Source: Octopus bimaculoides (Eukaryota). Taken from it: a stretch of 34,783 nucleotides of DNA. Position 1 is the stretch's first letter. Each line of letters opens with the position of its first letter. This document shows positions 3,047 to 34,783 of the stretch, one piece after another. The notes under the pieces are model-generated. The model saw nothing but the letters and a program-made list of their open reading frames with translations. It searched no databases and was not told the DNA's origin. The stretch is taken from the NCBI RefSeq assembly GCF_001194135.2, contig NC_068981.1:125633189-125667971 (forward strand), read 5' to 3'. A program made the translations under genes and the position numbers.

Positions 3047-3209
3047 GGTGTGACTGTGTGGTAAGAAGTATGCTTCCCAACCACATAGTTCTGGGTTCAG
3101 TCCCACTGTGTGGCACTATGAACAAGTGTCTTCTACAGTAACCTCAGGTAGATCAAAGCCTTGTGAGTGGATTTGGTAGACAGAAACTGAAGAAAGCCTG
3201 TTATATATA
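3047..3209 (+). mobile_element. SINE family B, 5' half (interrupted by the mariner)
   Basis: The head GACTGTGTGGTAAGAAG...GGGTTCAGTCCC (B-box-like) is shared with the copies at 25279 and 27712 and ends in a TA run. Confidence 0.75.
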
Positions 3210-3686: not shown

Positions 3687-4344
3687 AACACGGTCCTTTG
3701 CAACCGATCAGCTAATATTTTGTAAACAATGTTACAAAACGCTCCACCATGGCTGCAGTCACATGACAGAAACAAGTAAAGCAATAAAATCTATGCCATT
3801 TTCATCCTGAGCAAGGCCGGGTATCTCTGCTGGTCTATATATATATATATATATATATATTTATGTATAGCAGGTTTCTACAAAAATTTCTGTGTGCCAA
3901 ATTTACTCTCAAGGTATTGGTTGGCTTGTCGGCTACAGTTGAAGTCACTTGCTCAAACTGGCACATAAGACTGAATCTGAACCCATGTTCTTACTATACA
4001 CCCATCCTGTTCTTATCACTTTCTTTTTCTTTTTTTTTTTGTTACTACTACTACAGCCAACTTGCATAACACCTCTACTCAAGGCCATCCAGCACATTTC
4101 TTCTCATACTTCATATTGAGTCTCTTCTCCAGAGACTCATTTTACTCATATCCTACATCAGTATTACATCAACAAATTGGAATTCCTTTCCTTCTGACAG
4201 TTTTCTGCAAATCAATGGCCTACAACTGTTCAGGCTGAACACCAGATGCAACAGCTTCACCATTCTCAGAGCCCTTATGAAAGACACAGACTCAGTGTTT
4301 TCCTCTTGGCAACACCATTAAAAAAAAGTTGATAATGATTATTT

Positions 4345-4590
4345 ATTTATCTTTTATTTTTAACTTGTTTCAGTCATTTCACTGTGGCCTTACTAGGGCA
4401 CTGCCATGAAGAATTTTTAGTTGAATGAATCGATCTCAGGACTTATTTTTTCTTTTAAGCCTGGTAATATTCTATCAATCTCTTTTGCCAAACTGCTAAG
4501 CTACAGGGACATAAATAGCCTAACACTAGTCATCAATCGGTGGTGGGGAACAAACAAAGACACACACACATAGATACATACATACGTACG

Positions 4591-4620
<30 letters not shown>
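4345..4620 (-). mobile_element. SINE family B, 3' half with internal microsatellite
   Basis: The reverse complement reads (GT)n...GGCAAAAGAGATTGATAGAATA...GGCCACAGTGAAATGACTGAAACAAG, the same tail as the copies at 1815-2020, 21095-21270 and 32097-32249. Confidence 0.75.
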
Positions 4621-7443: not shown

Positions 7444-7615
7444 TGGCAGAAAGCTGGTAGAATCGTTAGTACACTGGATGAAATGCTTAGCAGTATTTCG
7501 TCCATCCTTACATTCTGAGTTCAAATTCCACCAAGGTCAACTTTGCTTTTCATCCTTTCAGAGTTAATAAGATGTTCCAGTTGAGCTCTGATGTCAATCT
7601 AATTGACTTAACTGC
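7444..7615 (+). mobile_element. tRNA-derived SINE family A
   Basis: It has an A-box-like TGGTAGAATCGTTAG, a B-box GAGTTCAAATTCC and the body GTCAACTTTGCTTTTCATCCTTT, shared with the copies near 11900, 18361, 21911, 22120 and 27240. Confidence 0.75.
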
Positions 7616-8100: not shown

Positions 8101-8143
<43 letters not shown>

Positions 8144-8325
8144 TGTATGCAAGTGTATGTTGGTATGTATGCATGTGTGTGTAGTGCATGTGTGTGTTGT
8201 GTGCATGTGTGGCTGAGTGTATGCATGTGTGTGCATTTTGTGTGTATGTGCATGTGTGTATGTGTATGAGTGTGTGTGTGGGGTGGTGGTGCATGCATGC
8301 ATGCATGTGTGCATGTGTGTGTGAA
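8085..8325. repeat. Compound (GT)n/(GCAT)n microsatellite
   Basis: Seen directly; it is the source of the spurious HT and CV ORFs. Confidence 0.9.
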
Positions 8326-8820: not shown

Positions 8821-9508
8821 NNNNNNNNNNNNNNNNNNNNNNNNNNNNNNNNNNNNNNNNNNNNNNNNNNNNNNNNNNNNNNNNNNNNNNNNNNNNNNNN
8901 NNNNNNNNNNNNNNNNNNNNNNNNNNNNNNNNNNNNNNNNNNNNNNNNNNNNNNNNNNNNNNNNNNNNNNNNNNNNNNNNNNNNNNNNNNNNNNNNNNNN
9001 NNNNNNNNNNNNNNNNNNNNNNNNNNNNNNNNNNNNNNNNNNNNNNNNNNNNNNNNNNNNNNNNNNNNNNNNNNNNNNNNNNNNNNNNNNNNNNNNNNNN
9101 NNNNNNNNNNNNNNNNNNNNNNNNNNNNNNNNNNNNNNNNNNNNNNNNNNNNNNNNNNNNNNNNNNNNNNNNNNNNNNNNNNNNNNNNNNNNNNNNNNNN
9201 NNNNNNNNNNNNNNNNNNNNNNNNNNNNNNNNNNNNNNNNNNNNNNNNNNNNNNNNNNNNNNNNNNNNNNNNNNNNNNNNNNNNNNNNNNNNNNNNNNNN
9301 NNNNNNNNNNNNNNNNNNNNNNNNNNNNNNNNNNNNNNNNNNNNNNNNNNNNNNNNNNNNNNNNNNNNNNNNNNNNNNNNNNNNNNNNNNNNNNNNNNNN
9401 NNNNNNNNNNNNNNNNNNNNNNNNNNNNNNNNNNNNNNNNNNNNNNNNNNNNNNNNNNNNNNNNNNNNNNNNNNNNNNNNNNNNNNNNNNNNNNNNNNNN
9501 NNNNNNNN
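8821..9508. other. Assembly gap
   Basis: N run flanked by TA-rich repeats. Confidence 1.
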
Positions 9509-10302: not shown

Positions 10303-10926
10303 GGAGGCGCAATGGCCCACTGGTTAGGGCAGCGGACTCAGGGTCATAGGATCGCAGTTTCATTTCCCAGACCGGGTGTTGTGAGTGTTTATTGAGCGAA
10401 AACACCTAAAAAGCTCCACAAGGCTCCGGCAAGGGATGGTGGCGAACCCTGCTGTACTCTTTCACCACAACTTTCTCTCACTCTTACTTCCTGTTTCTGT
10501 TGTGCCTGTAATTCAAAGGGTCAGCCTTGTCACACTGTGTCACGCTGAATATCCCCGAGAACTGCGTTAAGGGCACACATGTCTGTGGAGTGCTCAGCCA
10601 CTTGTACGTTAATTTCACGAGCAGGCTGTTCCGTTGATTGGATCAACTGAANNNNNNNNNNTCCGGCAAGGGATGGTGGCGAACCCTGCTGTACTCTTTC
10701 ACCACAACTTTCTCTCACTCTTACTTCCTGTTTCTGTTGTGCCTGTAATTCAAAGGGTCAGCCTTGTCACACTGTGTCACGCTGAATATCCCCGAGAACT
10801 GCGTTAAGGGCACACATGTCTGTGGAGTGCTCAGCCACTTGTACGTTAATTTCACGAGCAGGCTGTTCCGTTGATTGGATCAACTGAAACCCTTGACGTC
10901 GTAAGCGACGGAGTGCCAACAACAAC
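10303..10926 (+). mobile_element. tRNA-derived SINE family C with (CAA)n tail; internal part doubled across a 10-N gap
   Basis: It has an A-box-like TGGCCCACTGGTTAG, a degenerate B-box, a CpG-retaining body and ends CGGAGTGCCAACAACAAC. Segment 10425-10651 is identical to 10662-10888. Confidence 0.75.
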
Positions 10927-16989: not shown

Positions 16990-17175
16990 TATATATATAC
17001 ATATAGACAATGGGCATCTTTCAGTTTCTGTCTGCATAATTCACTTACAAGACTTTGGTTGTCCTGTGGCTATAGCAGGAAACACTTGCCCAAGCTGTCA
17101 CACAGTGGGACTGAACTCAAGGCCACGTGGTTGGGAAGCAAGCTTCTTAACCACACAGCAATGCCTGTGCATGTA
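16990..17175 (-). mobile_element. SINE family B, 5' half
   Basis: This is the reverse complement of the family-B head (GCTGTGTGGTTAAGAAGCTTGCTTCCCAACCAC...GAGTTCAGTCCCAC). Confidence 0.7.
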
Positions 17176-18504: not shown

Positions 18505-19218
18505 AGGACCTCACCATTGTCCACTGTCATGAAAAATGACTGCATTTAAAATGAAGCTCCAATTGTGGCATTCTAAATTGGAATGTGAGAATTTTGCACC
18601 ATTTCCAAACCTCAATACTTTCCTTGATAAAGATGGCCTTCGAGTTGATGTTGACATCCTTGACATAATGAAACAGCATGTCTTAATTCTTCATGCTGAA
18701 ATTCAAAGATACTTCTCCATTCTACAAAACTCTGCAATATCTGCTGTTGACCTTCCATCAGAAGATTACATCATTCAAGAACAGTTCATCAACTTGCTGA
18801 ATGATGGAGGTGCAAAAAACGCCTTCCGTAACATGTTGCAGTGAATTCTAGATTGAAATGATGCAGTCCTATCCAGATGTTGCCAAATTGGCCCTCAAGT
18901 TCATCGTTCCATTTGCAACAACGTATGAATGTGAGATGGCTTTTGCAACTTTACTCGCAATGAGCTGGATGTTGCGCATGACATGAAGGTTGCATTATCA
19001 AAAATGCAGCCTAATATTGAAGATGTACTACAGACCAAACAAATTCACCCCTCTCATTGAAATTTTTTATTTTATCTCATGAAAAATTATTTTATACAAG
19101 GTTATTTTGCTTTGTTTGTCTTCTCTGATTTTTTCATTTTGGGGCAGGGGTGGGGGTCAACAAAGCCTCAAAAAAAATGGGAGGGGGACGAAAATTTTTA
19201 AAAATTTAGGAACCAAGG
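18505..19218 (+). mobile_element. hAT (Buster/Charlie/SPIN-like) transposase C-terminal remnant with 3' end
   Basis: It reads MTAFKMKLQLW...FAPFPNL...IQEQFINLLND, then SYPDVAKLALKFIVPFATTYECEMAFATL...HDMKVALSKMQPNIE..QIHPSH* (dimerisation-domain motif PFxTTYxCExxF). A decayed TIR-like end AAAATTTAGGAACC lies near 19200-19215. Confidence 0.85.
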
Positions 19219-20785
19219 CTATAGTAGAAGATACTTGCCCAAGGTGCTATGCAGTGGGAATGAAACCAGAACCATGTAGTTGGAAAGCGAGCTTCTGCAC
19301 CTATAGAATTAAAAAAACAATGCAGTACCCAAATGGTTTTATATCATGCTCAGAATAGTAGCCGATTGTTGTAAGCTGTTAGGACACTGCATCCTTCAAA
19401 AATTCCATGCTTCTTGAATACTCACCAACATGTCTGACATGTCTATGCACCCTATCCTCTTTATGGATCTTATACGCTTCACTTTTGTCTTTGTGTTTTA
19501 TTCTGTCAACTCTGGATGCATTTTTGGCTTTCATTGCTGTCTTTGTTTACTTGACTTATTGCCACTCTCTGTCTTCCCTTTACCCTTTTTCAGTGAGTAC
19601 TGAATATAATTTATATCCTGAATAATTTTTGTTTTTTTAATTTTAAAAATATTACATAGTGATGAAACAAAATTTCCTAAAGAAATAAGTATGTGAGGAT
19701 ATCTAAGTGAAATTCATAACATTGAAAAAGAAACTCAAACAGTATTTTGAAAAATTACGAAATGAAATTATATTAATCTCAAATAGTAGAAAAGAAATTT
19801 GTACACATTAACTCTACAAAATTTTTTAAAGTTATATTCCCAACAAAACATCATATTCAAAGAATGTTTGTATTCCATGAACATATACATCTTCAACAAC
19901 AATTTGAATAGCTAAAAAACTTGTTTTGCTTTTGCTTTTTATTTTTGCTTGTTTGTTTTTGCAGGAAAATTTCAAGGCATCTTCTGTTCATATGCTATCT
20001 ATCTGTCTCTCTCCTACACACACACACACATATACACATACACATATTCCTTTATTTTTTTTACTAAATCAGCTTCTTGAATCTGCCTTATTGCATTAAG
20101 TCTCTAACATAATGCTGTTCTTAACAAAACCACTTCCCCCACACCTAAAAAAAGCCCCACAGATGAAAACGTTATTTTGTGAATACAAGTAAATTTTAAT
20201 CATTTCTAAAAAGCACATATGGAAATTAACAAGCAATTTTCAGAAAAGTATGAAAAGCCAATATTTTCCCCAGTACATTATTATATATGAACCAAAGAAA
20301 AAGAAGAGAAAGTATATTGGAAACTAACATGAATACTAGTACAATAAATAAATAAATAAAATGCATCCAATTGTACATTATATGCAATTATTAATTAATA
20401 CACAAACAAAAAAGAATTTTAAAACCTGTCTGTTGGTACAAGTGCAGATGTTGGTTCAGAAGTTCATTTTGCAGGAATATGGCTTTGGATTCAGTCCCAC
20501 TGTGGTATCCTGGGCATGTGTCTTTTGCTATAGCCCTAGCCCAACTTGTGGGTGAATTTGGTAGGTGGAAACTGTGTTGCAGTCAGTCATATATATATAT
20601 ATATATATAGAAAACAAAGTTATCTTATTCCACATGGGAAGAAATACAGAAAAAATAGAAGTTGAAAATGCACTGAGAATAGTTAAATTTTTTTATTATA
20701 TTTAAAGATTTTTCATATGTATGCAAAAAAAATCTTTTAATATAATAAAGAATTTTAAACTATTTTAAATTTTAAGTGTATTTTC

Positions 20786-21077
20786 NNNNNNNNNNNNNNN
20801 NNNNNNNNNNNNNNNNNNNNNNNNNNNNNNNNNNNNNNNNNNNNNNNNNNNNNNNNNNNNNNNNNNNNNNNNNNNNNNNNNNNNNNNNNNNNNNNNNNNN
20901 NNNNNNNNNNNNNNNNNNNNNNNNNNNNNNNNNNNNNNNNNNNNNNNNNNNNNNNNNNNNNNNNNNNNNNNNNNNNNNNNNNNNNNNNNNNNNNNNNNNN
21001 NNNNNNNNNNNNNNNNNNNNNNNNNNNNNNNNNNNNNNNNNNNNNNNNNNNNNNNNNNNNNNNNNNNNNNNNNNNNN
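20786..21077. other. Assembly gap
   Basis: N run. Confidence 1.
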
Positions 21078-21094
21078 TATATATATATATAAAT

Positions 21095-21270
21095 GTGTGT
21101 GTGTGTGTGTTTGTTCATATCCCCGTAACTTAGAGGTTTGGCAAAAGAGACCGACAGAATAAGTATAAGACTTTAAAAAAAAAAATAGGTACATGGGTTG
21201 ATTTGTTCAGCTAAACCTTTGAAGGCAGTGCCTCAACTTAACCACAGTCCAATGATTGAAACAAAAGGTA
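21095..21270 (+). mobile_element. SINE family B, 3' half
   Basis: (GT)n is followed by CCCCGTAACTTAGAGGTTTGGCAAAAGAGACCGACAGAATAAGTA...GATTGAAACAAAAGG. Confidence 0.75.
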
Positions 21271-21910
21271 AATGATATAATATAGAAAATAAGAATGAAG
21301 CAGAAATAAAATATCTGTCTTACTTATTCCGTATATCTTAAAAATTAAGATGTCCTCATTTCTCAACTTAAATTGTATTTTGGTAGGGAATAACAATGCA
21401 ACTTTGAGGAACAAGAATAGATCTACAGATAAAAAAAAAATGTCAGTCTTTTCTTAAGGTCAGAAATAGAATGAGCTTCAAGACCTGAAGAGAGAAGTGA
21501 GTTAAAGATAGGAATATAGCCAGAAAAAAAGTGCTGTATTTTGTTAATTCTTGTTACAAATCAATGGAAGAGGTGATTGGTACATTGATTTGGTCTACAG
21601 AAATAGTGTAAAAGTTAGAGGAAAAATGTGACAGCATGTTGTTCATCATTTTATGCATGAAAACTAAATAAATTCAGGAGGCTGCAATTTGAGTGAATCA
21701 AATGTTTAAGCTATGAGAGATTACACATCCCAGATATTCAATGTGTGAACTGTTTTTGAATCTGTTCATTTTTATTGACATCTTGAATATACAAAGTGAT
21801 CCAGAAATCCTTTTAGCATTTAAATAAAATAGAAATTACTTATACGTCATTTTGTTACAATCTCTTTTTTTTTTTTAATATATTTCTTAATATTTATTTT
21901 GCTATTTAAA

Positions 21911-22320
21911 GCAACGAGCTGGCAGAAACGTCAGCATGTAGGGCGAAATGCTTCATGGTATTTCATGTCTTTACGTTCTGAGTACAAATTTTGCCGAGGT
22001 CAACTTTGCCTTTCATCTTTTTGGGGTTGATAAATTAAGTACTAGTTGTGTACTGGGGACGATCTAATTGACTGGCCCCCTCCCCCAAAATTGCAGATCT
22101 TGTGCCTAGAATAGAAAAGAATTGTTAGCACAGCAGGCAAAATGCTTAGTGGTATTATGTCCGTTTTTACATTCAGAGTTCAAATTCTGCGAAGGCTGAC
22201 TCTACTTTTCATCCTTTAGGAGTCAGTAAAATAAATACCAGTTGTTCACTGGGATCAATGTAATCAACTGACCCCTTTCCTTGAAATTGCTGGCCTTGTG
22301 CCAAAATGTGAAACCAATAT
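21911..22320 (+). mobile_element. Head-to-tail dimer of SINE family A
   Basis: Two consecutive copies (about 21911-22118 and 22120-22320) each carry a B-box-like motif and the shared body, but have different tails. Confidence 0.75.
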
Positions 22321-24394: not shown

Positions 24395-24427
<33 letters not shown>

Positions 24428-24707
24428 NNNNNNNNNNNNNNNNNNNNNNNNNNNNNNNNNNNNNNNNNNNNNNNNNNNNNNNNNNNNNNNNNNNNNNNNN
24501 NNNNNNNNNNNNNNNNNNNNNNNNNNNNNNNNNNNNNNNNNNNNNNNNNNNNNNNNNNNNNNNNNNNNNNNNNNNNNNNNNNNNNNNNNNNNNNNNNNNN
24601 NNNNNNNNNNNNNNNNNNNNNNNNNNNNNNNNNNNNNNNNNNNNNNNNNNNNNNNNNNNNNNNNNNNNNNNNNNNNNNNNNNNNNNNNNNNNNNNNNNNN
24701 NNNNNNN
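24428..24707. other. Assembly gap
   Basis: N run. Confidence 1.

Positions 24708-26476: not shown

Positions 26477-26560
<84 letters not shown>
26477..26560. repeat. (AG)42 microsatellite
   Basis: Perfect dinucleotide run. Confidence 0.95.
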
Positions 26561-26563
<3 letters not shown>

Positions 26564-27239
26564 CAACTTTATAAACAACTGTTTTACAATATTTCGATTA
26601 AGTGTTCAATTAGTTGAGATGGTCGCCACCACATTCTGAATTATGGCAGAAAAAAACCCTGTTTTATTTTATTATTTTCAGCTATAAATAGGGAAGGTTT
26701 GGAAGTTTTGCTGTTGCTATTGTGGTCTAGCTTCGAGTTAGCCCTACTCATGCAGACCTATGGTCAAAAGTGTTTCATCCATGCCTAAAACGTCTGTTGT
26801 ATCAGGCATAGTGTACCTAAAACTATCCAATGTAGCCATCATACTTTAAGATAGCAGGGTGTTTGAAATGGATTTGCCCGCCACTTCTAGCAGATCGATC
26901 ACAGTTATTTTGCTTGCTCTCTTAACAAGATGTAGTTGATCGGAGTGTCAGAAATGAATTATATTAAGTCTTTGGCGATTTGCCAGTGATAGTAACTGGT
27001 TAAGTACCCTGTTAAGACCGACTTTACTTATTTTACCAAATTTGAGGTCACCTCTACATAGTCGCTTGACCTGCAAGTAGTAGCAGCGCCAAATCTCCCT
27101 CGTCACACACTACTGTCTTAAATAAAGGAAGAGTCACGTTAGACAATGAAGTCCTACAGAATCTCAAACAGACAGGAATGCCTTTTGTCATGTTTGTTCA
27201 AAATTAACCTGGAGTTAAGTATTAACAGTAATTCTTTCT

Positions 27240-27385
27240 CATTTTGGCACAAGGCCAGCAATGTTGAGCGGAGTTGGAGGAAGACGATTATATCGACCCT
27301 AGTGCTCAACTGGTATTAATTTTATCACCCCCGATGAAGGATGAAAGACAAAGTCGAACTCAGCAGATTTTGAATTCAAAACGTA
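27240..27385 (-). mobile_element. SINE family A, 3' part
   Basis: This is the reverse complement of the tail TTGCTGGCCTTGTGCCAAAAT and of the shared body. Confidence 0.65.
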
Positions 27386-27711
27386 AAAAAACGAAAGAAA
27401 TGCCCCTAAGCAATTTCTCCGGCGTGATAACGATTCTACCATCTTGCCGCCTCATCAATTAACAGTAGTATAATATGTTCGTATGAAACAATTGTTTTCT
27501 GTCCTCAAAAAAAATAAAAAGTTCATTTATTTTCTACCTAACACAATTCATTGTGTCAGCGCAACAGAAAAGTTCTTTATAAATAACCATTCCTTATCGC
27601 CGCCTGCTCCACTCTCCCATCATATACTTCTAGTAGCATCCTATAGGAGCAAAGTAATAATGAATAGAAAGTACAGGCACAAGTTTTTACATAATCTTTT
27701 TTTTTTTTTTT

Positions 27712-28282
27712 TTTTACCTTTTACTTGTTTCAGCAATTGGATTGCGGACATTTTAGGGCACTTTACTGAAGAGTTTTAGTTGAACGAATCTTCCCCATTA
27801 CTTATTTTTTAAAGCCTGGTACTTATTCTATTGTTTTTTTGTTTTTTTTTTTGCCGAACTAAGCTACAGGGATGTAAACGAACTAATACCGATTGTCAAG
27901 TGGTGGTGAACAAACACAAAGGCGCGCACACACTTAACGTTGTATGTTTGTGTGTGTGTATACACACACACACACACACATATACATATATATAGGGTTA
28001 GGGTTACCTGGATATGCATCTATATATATATACATGTAGATGTAGGTATGTACATATATGTATGTATACATGCATATGTTTATATATCATTTGTATTATA
28101 TATATATATATATACACACACACAGGATGAACTTCTTCCAGTTTCCGTCTTCTCTACAATATCCACTCCCAAGGCTTTGGTCGGCCCGAAGCCATATAAT
28201 AAAAGACATTTGCTCAAGATGTCGCGCAGTGGTACTGAACCCAGAACCATGTGGTTAGGAATCTAACTTCTTACCACAAAGC
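27712..28282 (-). mobile_element. SINE family B, complete copy with internal compound microsatellite
   Basis: The tail is at 27712-27930, the microsatellite at 27945-28125 and the head at 28125-28282, all in minus orientation. Confidence 0.75.
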
Positions 28283-28764: not shown

Positions 28765-29960
28765 ACGAAGGGTGATTGATTAGCAGAATCGGTAGGAGCC
28801 TCCACCTGGTTGTACATCATGCTAGAAATAGCAAGCAAATCTCTGTCAAACCATACCTTAATCATCGTAACAGAATTGAAATTCTGATGGGACAGTTATG
28901 GCGGGAATGCGGTTGAGCGACTTGCTAGAAATAGCAGTTAAATCACCATCAAACCACACTTTACCATCTTAGGAAAACGAAAGATGCATTAAACGATGTG
29001 GTCCTTGATATAAAAAGGAGGGGGGATCATAATGGCCGGAACGGTGGGAGTCTCTACGTGGTTGCACGACTTGCTAGAAATAGAAATAGAAACAAGATCA
29101 GTTTCAAACCACACACTTTCATTATCTTAACAAAATGAAGGATACATTAGACATTGTGGTCCTTGACATACAAGAAAGAGGGACAGTCATGGTTGGAACG
29201 CGGTTGTGTGACCTGCTAGGTGTAGCTGCTAGATCTCTCTCAAACCACACGCACCTTTACTATCTTAACGAAATGAAGGATACTTTAGACGATGTGGTCC
29301 TTAATATACAAAAATGCAGGATAGTTATGGCTTAAACAGTAGGGGCGTTTCGGCGGATGCGCGACCTGCAAGATATAGCAGTTAGATCTAGCTCAAACCA
29401 CGCACCTTTGCCAGTGTAACGAAATGAAAAATACTGTGGACGATGTGGTTCTTCATATATTAAAAAGCGGGATGGGCATGACTGGAGTACTAGGAACCTC
29501 TACGCGGTTGCTGACCTGCTAGATATAGCAGCTAGATCTCCCTCAAGCTATACACACACACACACACCTTTACTGTCATACCGAAATGAAGGATACCTCG
29601 GACGATGTGTCCTTGATCTGCAAAAAACAAAAAACAAAAAAAAAAACGAAAAAACCCGAAGAAACATGGATTGTCATAGCTGGAACGCCTTCCATCATAG
29701 GTCTGCTTAGACTTACAGCTAAGTAATATAACAACAGCGACAGCAACTACACGAGTTGTATGTAAGAGTGTGATATAAGTCAACTTTGAACGACGTGGTC
29801 CTTGATATACAAAACGATAGGGTTGTCATGGTTGGAACTCCTTCGATCATACGTCTACTCAGACCTTATGACTTTATAGCTAAGTAATAATAATAATAAT
29901 AACAACAACAACCACAATAACGGAATACAAGTTGTATGTAAGTGTGTTTGTGATATAAGG
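28765..29960 (+). repeat. Diverged tandem array of about 150-bp units derived from a dispersed SINE-like repeat
   Basis: The anchor GACYTGCTAGA.ATAGC recurs at about 28821, 28924, 29073, 29215, 29368 and 29518. The anchor GATGTGGTCCTT recurs at about 28995, 29153, 29291, 29442, 29604 and 29792. Single dispersed copies of the same sequence occur near 5800, 12180, 26710 (-) and 27045. Confidence 0.85.
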
Positions 29961-30039: not shown

Positions 30040-30744
30040 CTACACGCGTGGCAGTGAAGACGAGGCTACTATTTGTCGGGCGAGAAAGTCGTCTGCAGTC
30101 GGCTTTTCAGAAATTGACATTACCGCATTAGATATATCACACAAATAGCACAACAACCAACCCAGTGGTTTTTACGATTAATATAGATATCAACATCTCT
30201 TTTGTTGCTGTTATTATTCCTGTATTTTTTTTCTTCCCCACTCTTGCTTAATTATTTCATATTTCAAACTAAGATTCTAAAATTGCATTATAAACTACTT
30301 TCATTGATTGAAACAAATATATATGTTTTTTTCTTCTTCAGTGGATGAGAAGAGAAGTATATTAAATAATTTGCAAATCGCTTTTATTAAGGATTAAAAA
30401 AAAAAAAAAGAATCCCCTAACCCCAGAAGGAGAGGTATGTCAGTGATGAAGATGATGACCAAAACAAACGTGTACTGCGTTTATAATTATGGTTTCACTT
30501 GATAAAGAAAGGTTGTATTTCCAAATAAGTCAAGGAAAGAATAACCAAAATCAAATAAGGTTCTTTAACTTAATTTATTTCTATTTTTATATATTTTTTC
30601 TCCCCGCGATCTTCCTATATTCATAAGTTATTGTCATCTTTTAAGAATAATTACAAAAATATATATATATATCAAAATATCAAACCCAATCAAGGTAGAA
30701 AAACACAAAAAAAGGCCGTTGTTTAGAAAACACTAGAAACCAGA
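30040..30744 (+). promoter_or_regulatory. Probable promoter/TSS and 5' UTR of Slo2
   Basis: A unique GC/CpG-rich island (30040-30125) is followed by AT-rich non-repetitive sequence up to the ATG. A possible UTR intron has donor GAG|GTATGT at 30435 and candidate acceptors near 30628 and 30645. The TSS is inferred, not seen. Confidence 0.35.
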
Positions 30745-30842
30745 ATGGTATCTCAGGCGGATTTTCAAGTACCACCTCTTCCTCCTCGATATCGCTTCAG
30801 GGATTTAATTTGGGGTGAATCTGGACATCAGGACGAAACCAG
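30745..30842 (+). CDS. Slo2: First coding exon of a sodium-activated potassium channel (Slo2 / KCNT1-KCNT2, Slack/Slick family); the rest of the gene lies beyond the window
   Basis: ATG at 30745 follows an in-frame TAG (30724-30726). Translation is [32 protein letters not shown] plus AG, then the donor AG|GTAAAT and a T-rich intron. It matches the remembered vertebrate KCNT2 N-terminus [32 protein letters not shown], with [13 protein letters not shown] identical. The phase-2 AG would complete the conserved Arg. Confidence 0.92.
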
Positions 30843-31844
30843 GTAAATTCATTAATAATGTTGAAAAGTATTTCGTTGAATATTTCCTTTCTTTTCTCTT
30901 TTACTCATTCTTTGATTATATTTCCTACTTTCGATTTCTTTTTTTTGTTTTTACCTTTTATTTTTCAATCGTCTTTCTCCACTTCCATTACCAATTATTC
31001 TTTTTTCTTTTACATATCAGCTTTTCTCAGTTTCCTTATATTCCCTATAAATCTCATTTCTGAAAAAAGCCTTGTCTGACTGTGTTTAATACTCTTCATT
31101 TAATTTATAAGTTTTACTTTTTTTTTTCATTGACTTTTTTTTACCGTCTTTGATCATTCTCGCCCGCTGTCAATATACTCGTGCCAATTCGCGTGTTTAT
31201 ACACACATACACACATATGTATATAGATGTGTGTGTATGCATGTGTGCAGTTGTGTATATGTGTGCATATGCGTGTCTAGATCGCAACGTGACACGTTGT
31301 AACAATAGTTGTCACGCGTGGCTATTCAAAATATTTCAATGTGTCGATATGAACGGTAAATTCACAATATGTTCTACATGTCAACGTGTATACGTTCTAT
31401 TTTACTGTTTTTATATGCAATTATAAATGTTGTTGCTATAAATAAGACTGAAGTATAAACGAAAATTGTTACATCAAATACAGATATACACGCATATTAA
31501 AATAATAATCATGCATATATAAACAATACAATGCATTTAATGTGCGTGTGTGAGTGTGCACGCGCGTGCACATGCAAAACATTGCTTTGACGTACAATTT
31601 CCATGCTTGCATGGGTCAGACGGAATTCATTGAGACAGACTTTCTACAGCTGGATGCCCCTCCTGTCACCAACATTCACCAGTTTTCTAAGTAAGGGAAT
31701 ATGCTTTTCACAGAAAACTGGAAACGAAAAACATAATTTGTATGACGATGATGTTTGTTTTACAAACATCACGTGATGTCATACACACAGGAGTACACAC
31801 AAACGAATATACATATGCACACACGCACATACTCACACATATAT

Positions 31845-31845
31845 A

Positions 31846-31930
<85 letters not shown>
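31845..31930. repeat. (TA)n(CA)n microsatellite
   Basis: Seen directly. Confidence 0.9.
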
Positions 31931-31933
<3 letters not shown>

Positions 31934-32249
31934 CTGTTTTCTTTCAATTCCCATTTACTAAATCCAGTCACAAGACTTAAGTTGGCTCAAGGCTGTTGTA
32001 AAAAAAACTCTTGCCCTAACTGCAGCCCAGTGGAACTGAACCCAAAACCACATGGTTGGAAAGCTAACTTCTCAACTACATAGCACATGTGCATGATCCC
32101 TAACATAGTGGTTCGGCAAAAGAGACTGATAGAATAAGTAGCAGGCTTACAAAGAAAAAGTCAAGGGGTTGATTTTTTTCAACTAAAAGACGGTGCTTCA
32201 GCATGGCCACAGTCAAAATGACTGAAACAAAGGGAGTAAAGAAAAAGAG
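31931..32249. mobile_element. SINE family B: minus-strand 5' half (31931-32084) abutting a plus-strand 3' half (32097-32249)
   Basis: Direct comparison with the complete copies in this window. Confidence 0.7.
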
Positions 32250-32622
<373 letters not shown>

Positions 32623-33074
32623 TTATCTTTAAACAGCCAAATCAAAAGATATCCAGTAAAGACCCTGAAGAAACTGCACCAGTTTTATAGTAGGGTTGCA
32701 ATTGCAACAGTTACTAATTGGTGCAATTGAAACATGTGTTGGTCTATGTAAGATGGTATATAAATTTAAGTAAAGGTAATGCTATGCAACTTTGTAGTAA
32801 TCCTTATTATTAATATTGTTAATATTTATAGTCCAGGAAACCTATATGGTTAAGGAAATATATATATATATATATGCGCTATATGTTTATACGTGCACGT
32901 GCATGCAAATATACAAATATAGACTGAGTATGTGTGTAAATGTATCTTATTTGTATTTGTGCATGCATGTGTGTGTGTGTGTGTGTATATATATATACAC
33001 ACACACTTACATACAAATCTGTATGCATTATATATATGTGTGTGTGTATATATATATATACATACATATACATA

Positions 33075-34337
33075 CAGGGGTTGAACAAAATAATGGAAAC
33101 ATAAAAATTTCAAACAAATTTATTTTAACATGGGGTAGGACTGCCTCTGGCAGTAATTACAGCTTGAATTCTATGCGGTATGGACTCGTACAAAGTTTTA
33201 ATTGTTTCCAAAGGAACTTTTGTCCATTCTTCAGCTAAAACAGTCTCCAGTTCTTGCAGTGATGATGGTGGAGGATATCGACTCCTAACTTGTTTTTCTA
33301 AAATGCACCATAAATGCTCAATAATATTGAGATCTGGGGGCTGTGGTGACCAGATAAGATGTTCAACTTCATTAGAATGTTCCTCATGCCATTCAGTAAC
33401 ATCTTTAGCTGTGTGAATTGCTGCATTATCATCCCGAAAGATTGTGTTTCACTCTGGAAACAGTTCTACAACCATAGGATGAATTTGATCAGATAAAATG
33501 TTTAAATAGTCTTGACTATTAATTCTGCCATGAAGGGAAACCATTGGGTCGGCAGATTTCCAAGATATAGCCCCCTACCAGACCATCACAGTTCCTCCTC
33601 CATGTTTAACAGTTGGAAGAAGGCAGTCTGGGTCAAATGCTTCTTTTGGCCGTCACCACATGTATACTCGGCCTGTGGTCGGAAATAAGATAACAAGTGA
33701 CTCGTCCAAGAAAATAACATTCTTCCACTGCTCTAGGGACCAATTCTGTGGGTTTTTACTCCACTCTAAATGCTTTGCAATATTTGTTTTTGAAAGCAGT
33801 AGTTTTCTGATTGCAGCCCTTCCGTGAAATCCAGCTTTGTGCAGCTCCTGGTGAACAGTTTTTGTGGAAACTGGCTCCTCGAGGTGGTCATTAAGCTCTG
33901 CAGTAATTTTGGGAGCTGTACTTTTGTGATCCTTTCTAACAATTTATGTAAGAGCCTGACGGTTCCTATCTGAAAGTTTTGGTTTTCTTCTGGAGTTTTG
34001 TTTTGACGAGGTGGTTTTCCCTTTCTCAAAGGCTGTCATTTCTTTCAAGACAGTACTTCTTGATACACCAAACATTTCAGCTATTTTCATTATGCTAGTG
34101 CCTGCCATATGAGCACCAACAATTTGACCACTTTGAAAGTCCAATAGATCTGTCATTTTAATGAATTTTAATTACCTTTTTCTGATAGTATCTCAAAAGA
34201 AACAGCAATTTTAGCAAAACATATTAAGCAACATTAATAATAAATCAAAAAACATAAAAATAAACAAGCTTTTGACGGTTTTATAGATATTTCAAAATTA
34301 TGATGCTAGGTATTTTCATTATTTTGTCCAACCCCTG
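33075..34337 (-). mobile_element. Full-length Tc1-like DNA transposon with DD36E spacing, in Slo2 intron 1
   Basis: About 26-bp TIRs (CAGGGGTTGAACAAAATAATGGAAAC and, on the other end, CAGGGGTTGGACAAAATAATGAAAAT) are flanked by TA on both sides. Confidence 0.95.
33125..34156 (-). pseudogene. Tc1-like transposase pseudogene (344 codons, 4 premature stops, no frameshift)
   Basis: Manual translation: MTDLLDFQSGQIVG...FGVSRSTV (HTH), ...VIFLDES..., KHGGGTVMVW, FRDDNAAIHT...WSPQPPDLNIIEHLW...ARGSPTPC*. There are 36 residues between the second D and the E. Confidence 0.9.
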
Positions 34338-34399
34338 TATGTATATATATGTATATACATATGCTTATAACATATATAAATATGTATACATTATATATA

Positions 34400-34783
34400 T
34401 ATCATCATCATCATCATCATCGTTTAACGTCCTCTTTCCATACTAGCATGGGTTGGACGATTTGACTGAGGACTGGTGAAACCAGATGGCAACACCAGGC
34501 TCCAATCTAATTTGGCAGAGTTTCTACAGCTGGATGCCCTTCCTAACGCCAACCACTCAGAGAGTGTAGTGGGTGCTTTTACGTGTCACCCGCACGAAAA
34601 CGGCCACGCTCGAAATGGTGTCTTTTATGTGCCACCCGCACTAGAGCCAGTCCAGGGGCACTGGCAACAATCTCGCTTGAAAACCCTACAAGGCCAGTCA
34701 GGCGGTACTGGCAACGGTCACGCTCAGGATGGTACATCTTATGTGCCACCCGCACAAGAGCCAGTCCAGGGGCCCTGGCAACG
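34400..34783 (-). mobile_element. Non-LTR retroelement/SINE 3' end (RTE-related tail) with an internal repeat of about 116 bp
   Basis: A (CAT)n tail is followed by TTTCTACAGCTGGATGCCCTTCCTAACGCCAACC, which also occurs at about 31595-31680. The motif TATGTGCCACCCGCAC.AGAGCCAGTCCAGGGGC.CTGGCAAC occurs twice. The element is truncated by the window edge. Confidence 0.65.

Follow-up and report, generated by a model that had tools for sequence, protein, structure and literature searches.

Features of the locus

The window, meaning the whole 34,783-nt stretch of DNA analysed here, carries on its plus strand a short coding stretch whose letters run from ATG GTA TCT CAG to GAA ACC AG and are followed directly by GTAAAT. 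The features that define it are as follows.

30724-30726, plus strand: in-frame TAG, six codons 5′ of the ATG
30745-30842, plus strand: coding part of a Slo2/KCNT-type exon 1, 98 nt, comprising 32 codons plus the AG of a split Arg codon
30745-30747, plus strand: start codon ATG in the context AGAATGG, with A at -3 and G at +4
30769-30816, plus strand: core of 16 codons, the invariant alignment columns, used for the codon comparison
30843-30848, plus strand: phase-2 splice donor GTAAAT, preceded by AG at 30841-30842
30843-34783, plus strand: opening part of intron 1, which has a length of at least 3941 nt up to where the window stops; neither an acceptor nor exon 2 was found in it

No further ATG occurs within 255 nt upstream of 30745, and the in-frame TAG means that the frame cannot extend 5′ within the exon. 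At the other end, reading on past the exon gives AGG TAA (Arg, stop). The encoded product of exon 1 is a 33-residue N-terminus whose final Arg is completed by exon 2. When the window sequence was read again, the coordinates, the count of 32 codons and the phase-2 intron given in the original prediction all proved exact, as did its remark that the exon is too short for the ORF track: the stop-to-stop piece that contains the exon begins KTLETRM and is only 39 codons long, so it is missing from a list that starts at 60 aa. The exon seems hidden only through its 33-codon length and the very long intron that follows it. An Rfam and tRNA scan of the window found no RNA gene.

Homology to Slo2/KCNT channels

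A profile HMM was built from 186 homologous peptides taken from public data, with the window left out, and was run against the window translated in six frames (1471 pieces). The best of them, 30727-30843, reached 59.8 bits (E = 8.9e-18), whereas the runner-up had E = 2. Searching the exon peptide against the PDB with phmmer gave human KCNT1 (8hir_A, E = 1e-4) as the sole match, and full-length Slo2 proteins compared with the window by tblastn matched the exon at E = 4e-7 to 4e-6. The profile score and the PDB match bear out the earlier proposal that this is a coding first exon of a Slo2/KCNT channel with a Slick-like N-terminus. Slo2/KCNT channels have a six-TM pore domain and, after it, two RCK domains, and they are activated by intracellular Na+, or by Cl- or Ca2+ in some invertebrate members.

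Word-index protein searches gave mostly short ORFs and fragments of gene models, at most 148 aa long. Matches named KCNT1 came from Silurus asotus, Tachysurus ichikawai and Homo sapiens, and those named KCNT2 or KCNT2-like from Alligator mississippiensis and Diabrotica virgifera; matches from many fishes, the sea slug Elysia marginata and the beetle Gonioctena are annotated as "hypothetical protein". No named cephalopod protein was among the matches returned for the exon peptide, and exact-match queries with this peptide and with a 102-aa ORF of the window gave no entry. An exhaustive representative search added the long proteins P0123 (1275 aa, UniParc UPI00078A5BC2), P0200 (Umbra pygmaea, 1186 aa), P0163 (Geotrypetes KCNT2-like), P0138 (Mizuhopecten yessoensis KCNT2-like, XP_021341778.1), P0188 and P0191. 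Four of these (P0123, P0200, P0188 and P0191) combine the N-terminal motif with the Pfam domains Ion_trans_2 and Slo-like_RCK, and P0123 and P0200 additionally contain BK_channel_a. Every retrieved homologue with recognisable domains and the motif at its N-terminus is a Slo2/KCNT channel. In the window, the module of the Slick and Slack-A type likewise stands at the start of the protein, with 12 core residues identical.

Two database entries call for separate comment. The top score in the exhaustive search belonged to P0121, a repetitive, low-complexity protein whose match is made up of 17 short stretches, and we took it as a false positive. P0194 (232 aa) contains a fragment of a proteasome non-ATPase subunit (Pfam Proteasom_PSMB) together with, at residues 157-184, the peptide of KCNT exon 1. 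Here a predictor has probably fused neighbouring genes, and the entry shows that gene models with the exon-1 peptide can mislead.

Motif variants and comparison with known channels

A 12-residue motif inside the core is common to the named KCNT1 and KCNT2 proteins. The residues that follow it vary among the retrieved homologues, being LLGD in 103, ILGD in 32, IWG[EDGS] in 16, IMGD in 13 and VWGE in 5. The original prediction had remarked that the motif is intact here but is followed by IWGE rather than LLGD; this is how the sequence reads, but the 16 homologues with IWG[EDGS] mean that the variant is not distinctive. In P0123 the IWG version is joined to a full-length Slo2 body, so the IWG peptide belongs to a Slo2 channel in at least one invertebrate protein.

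Vertebrate KCNT2 (Slick, Slo2.1) resembles the window exon in an identical 13-residue motif, which is followed by xxG[DE], about eight variable residues and a terminal Arg. The Alligator KCNT2 isoform shares with the window a short N-terminus and the residue at which the exon ends; the protein then continues with VQIEFYMNENTFKERL. Vertebrate KCNT2 differs in having LLGD where the window has IWGE and in the residues before and after the motif. For the window gene, both the link to a channel body and the ion dependence, including activation by Na+, are presumed. The human KCNT1 Slack-A isoform has the module as in the window and continues with VQVEFYVNENTFKERL, and catfish KCNT1 has its phase-2 donor at the position seen in the window. 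In KCNT1, however, L replaces the first P of the window motif. Vertebrate Slack-A also alternates with the long Slack-B N-terminus, whereas the window yielded no exon resembling that of Slack-B.

The nearest relatives of the window exon for which the protein body is known are P0123 and Mizuhopecten XP_021341778.1. P0123 shares the IWG variant and an exon-1 peptide that ends in R, there joined to pore and RCK domains; it is 72% identical to the window exon over 25 aligned residues and differs from it in the flanks of the motif.

A conserved phase-2 boundary and a long first intron

We compared the exon boundary at the DNA level in ten related loci (L001-L010). In 10 of 10 the exon ends at the identical codon position with AG/GT in phase 2, the slash marking the exon boundary here and below. 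The donors include the following.

L001, invertebrate contig: AG/GTGAGT
L002, invertebrate contig: AG/GTAAGC
L003, beetle Gonioctena: AG/GTGAGT
L004, sea slug Elysia: AG/GTGAGC
L005, catfish KCNT1: AG/GTAAAG
L006 and L007, two contigs of one assembly: AG/GTAAGT
L009, contig: AG/GTTAGT
L010, contig: AG/GTATGT

Exon 1 of the window ends in the same way, inside the Arg codon that precedes V-x-V-E-F, with AG/GTAAAT at 30841-30848. Because the AG/GT donor is conserved at this point, many database ORFs end right after the Arg.

The acceptor side of this intron could be read in one related assembly. Contig ctg86981 of ENA ERZ25071447 carries exon 1 (P0006) at about 10.6 kb and exon 2 (P0238) at about 105.6 kb on the same strand. 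Its exon-2 acceptor reads ttttcag/A GTT CTG GTT GAG TTC TTT ACC AAT GAG AAG, in which the A completes AG+A to give Arg, and the two exons are thus separated by a phase-2 intron of about 95 kb. At the protein level, P0123 and Mizuhopecten XP_021341778.1 both run from exon 1 into exon 2, the latter as ...DDR/VRVEFFTNEKSLKERL, and vertebrate proteins read ...DDR/VQVEF, which fits a phase-2 join. In the same ENA assembly the exon is present on two large contigs, ctg86981 (L006) and ctg86469 (L007), with near-identical flanks, and this pair may be haplotigs or may reflect a recently duplicated Slo2 5′ end.

Neither exon 2 nor any other Slo2 exon was found on either strand of the window by motif scans or by tblastn with full-length Slo2 proteins, and in L001, L003, L004 and L005 the 10 kb that follow exon 1 likewise yielded no exon 2. 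First introns in relatives are longer than 10 kb and reach about 95 kb; an exon 2 is therefore not to be expected in the 3941 nt available, and its lack there is uninformative. As the window holds no other Slo2 exon, the linkage of exon 1 to a channel body rests on homology, from which we infer that it would be joined to a body with pore and RCK domains.

Selection on the exon

Codon comparison of the 16-codon core between the window and the other loci gave 6-13 synonymous and 0-3 non-synonymous changes. The comparison with L009 gave 13 synonymous changes and no non-synonymous one. Nucleotide differences in the core fall mostly at third positions. Similarity to the other loci at the DNA level is confined to 30757-30822; it ends inside the exon limits, and the flanks are dissimilar. 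We conclude that the exon is protein-coding and under strong constraint, with purifying selection acting on it.

Interpretation of the exon and alternative readings

Taken with the homology and the conserved boundary, these results make it very probable that 30745-30842 is the first coding exon of the Slo2/KCNT orthologue of this animal, probably a lophotrochozoan. Splicing across a long phase-2 intron would join it to an exon 2 further downstream, past the end of the window. Under this interpretation the exon would supply the start codon and the whole 33-residue cytoplasmic N-terminus before the first transmembrane segment. Judging from relatives, exon 2 would start N/GTN... and encode V-x-V-E-[FY]-[FY]-x-N-E-x-x-[FL]-K-E-R-L...F-I-K-N-Q-R-S-S.

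We also considered that the exon is a genuine Slo2 exon but one of several alternative first coding exons with promoters of their own, as for rat Slack-A and Slack-B, or that non-coding 5′ exons precede it. This reading overlaps the interpretation given above without either excluding the other, and we regard it as possible, if somewhat unlikely. N-termini unrelated to that of the window are found before exon 2 (VRVEF...) in Lytechinus pictus (two, P0220 and P0225), Candidula (P0219), Limulus (P0222), Nephila (P0227), Pollicipes (P0232) and Macrostomum (P0218), and these may mean that alternative first exons are common outside vertebrates too, although some of them may instead be prediction errors. 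Five 5′ variants and two promoters are known for rat Slack (PMC3850776), and the human KCNT1 fragment P0228 extends the frame upstream of the exon-1 peptide. Within the window, however, no such exon was recognised in the 30.7 kb upstream, a stretch in which homology would not reveal exons of this kind, and the 264 retrieved proteins match the window nowhere but at 30745-30842. There is also no pyrimidine-rich YAG acceptor within 200 nt upstream of the ATG.

Far less probable is an orphan or duplicated copy, intact but no longer spliced to a functional Slo2 as a result of segmental duplication, rearrangement or mis-scaffolding. Such a copy would account for the lack of exon 2 in the following 3.9 kb; the scaffold is of draft quality, the window having four N gaps and an exact duplication that flanks one of them, and the presence of the exon on both L006 and L007 of one related assembly points in the same direction. 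We nonetheless consider this reading very unlikely, since neither the ATG nor the frame nor the donor is damaged and since relatives as a rule have first introns of 10 kb to 95 kb. Moreover, the core protein is identical to that of relatives despite 6-13 synonymous codon differences, which indicates continuing selection and not decay.

That a chance ORF in AT-rich, repeat-rich intergenic DNA merely resembles KCNT has a negligible probability: the ORF has only 33 codons and its surroundings are of low complexity, but the score against a window-free profile (E = 8.9e-18, with the next piece at E = 2) and the synonymous-only pattern of substitution rule this out, and the donor lies at the conserved position. 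A processed pseudogene is also ruled out, as the AG is followed by a donor and an intron and not by exon 2.

Possible role of the N-terminus

What such an exon would be expected to do can be judged from vertebrate channels. In rat, Slack-A and Slick have an N-terminus of this type and activate rapidly, whereas Slack-B has a long unrelated N-terminus driven from a second promoter, activates slowly and shows longer open times (PMC3850776). Slack-B is also the form that co-assembles with Slick, which raises surface expression (PMC3850776). By analogy with this work on rat and human channels (PMC3850776), the N-terminus encoded in the window would tune gating and trafficking, and the gene would be expected to yield a Slick- or Slack-A-like channel.

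The 12-residue core motif matches the short-motif patterns PxxPxR and PPxY at the level of its letters. Because the invariant stretch fits these patterns, its most likely role would be in docking, whether inside the channel or to a partner protein. A search of the literature on the motif string, on Slo2 in cephalopods and on the structural role of the N-terminus found nothing relevant.

Age of the module and consequences for annotation

The core motif and the position of the phase-2 intron are common to vertebrates and protostomes, as seen in catfish KCNT1, two beetles, a sea slug and a scallop. The original prediction had dated the N-terminal module and its phase-2 intron to before the protostome-deuterostome split, and this has gained support from the donor in a fish, a beetle, a gastropod and further contigs and from the acceptor in one invertebrate; module and intron fit an origin before that split. 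Since the Slick- or Slack-A-type N-terminus and the intron position are common to vertebrates, molluscs and insects, the N-terminal module is old and strongly constrained, and it makes a reasonable target for functional study. The exon itself is an ordinary, ancient and correctly identified one that leaves knowledge of the Slo2/KCNT family unchanged.

The value for annotation is that a 98-nt exon would carry the true start codon of a large gene for a neuronal K+ channel. The original prediction had also suggested that automated annotation may miss this exon. In several genomes it is indeed stray, standing alone in "hypothetical protein" models of 60-85 aa such as ElyMa_006611700 of Elysia, JTB14_030072 of Gonioctena and those of several fishes, but in the scallop RefSeq joins it to the rest of the channel (XP_021341778.1). 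We put forward as a tentative and rather doubtful idea that the exon is absent from the source gene models, leaving the Slo2 N-terminus wrong or truncated, and that IWG[ED] is a lineage-wide change that would alter gating or partner binding relative to LLGD. Were this true, then together with the ancient phase-2 intron it would make the Slick- or Slack-A-type N-terminus the ancestral bilaterian state and Slack-B a later addition.

DNA surrounding the exon

The window has a GC content of about 33%, which, like its many TG/TA microsatellites, would suit a cephalopod but is no diagnostic sign of one. Inside intron 1 lies a degraded transposon in antisense orientation, with the following parts.

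33128-34171, minus strand: degraded Tc1/mariner-type transposon
33947-34171, minus strand: Tc1/mariner HTH piece
33656-33943, minus strand: HTH_Tnp_Tc3_2 (E = 2e-13)
33128-33448, minus strand: DDE_3 (E = 1e-8)

Because its pieces sit in three different frames, the transposase gene is broken. The part of intron 1 within the window also holds microsatellites. These are dense in the window as a whole, examples being (TA)n/(TATACA)n over 377 nt at 32250-32626, a perfect (AG)42 at 26477-26561, (AT)22 followed by (AC)24 at 31839-31931 and (TG)n over 177 nt at 8104-8280.

Self-BLAST placed three dispersed repeat families in the window.

3054-3209, 17002-17158, 19217-19296 and 28133-28281: dispersed repeat family 1
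4339-4620, 21114-21292, 27699-27986 and 32088-32234: dispersed repeat family 2
7445-7609, 21917-22073, 22118-22313 and 27235-27451: dispersed repeat family 3

Their members are SINE-like, about 150 nt long and 68-76% identical, and occur in both orientations; the families gave no tRNA or Rfam match. A degenerate tandem array at 28889-29626, some 1.1 kb 5′ of the ATG, has a period of about 149 bp and copies that are 67-69% identical. It falls under the threshold of Tandem Repeats Finder and was seen by self-BLAST.

An exact 227-nt duplication (10425-10651 and 10662-10888) flanks a gap of 10 Ns and is almost certainly an artefact of scaffolding or gap closing. The other N gaps are these.

8821-9508: N gap
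20786-21077: N gap
24428-24707: N gap

TA repeats adjoin at least two of the gaps, on the 3′ side of 8821-9508 (an array from 9509) and on the 5′ side of 24428-24707 (24399-24427). At the end of the window, a 70-nt unit that is GC-rich relative to its surroundings occurs twice, at 34599-34668 and 34713-34782, the two copies being 114 nt apart and 86% identical.
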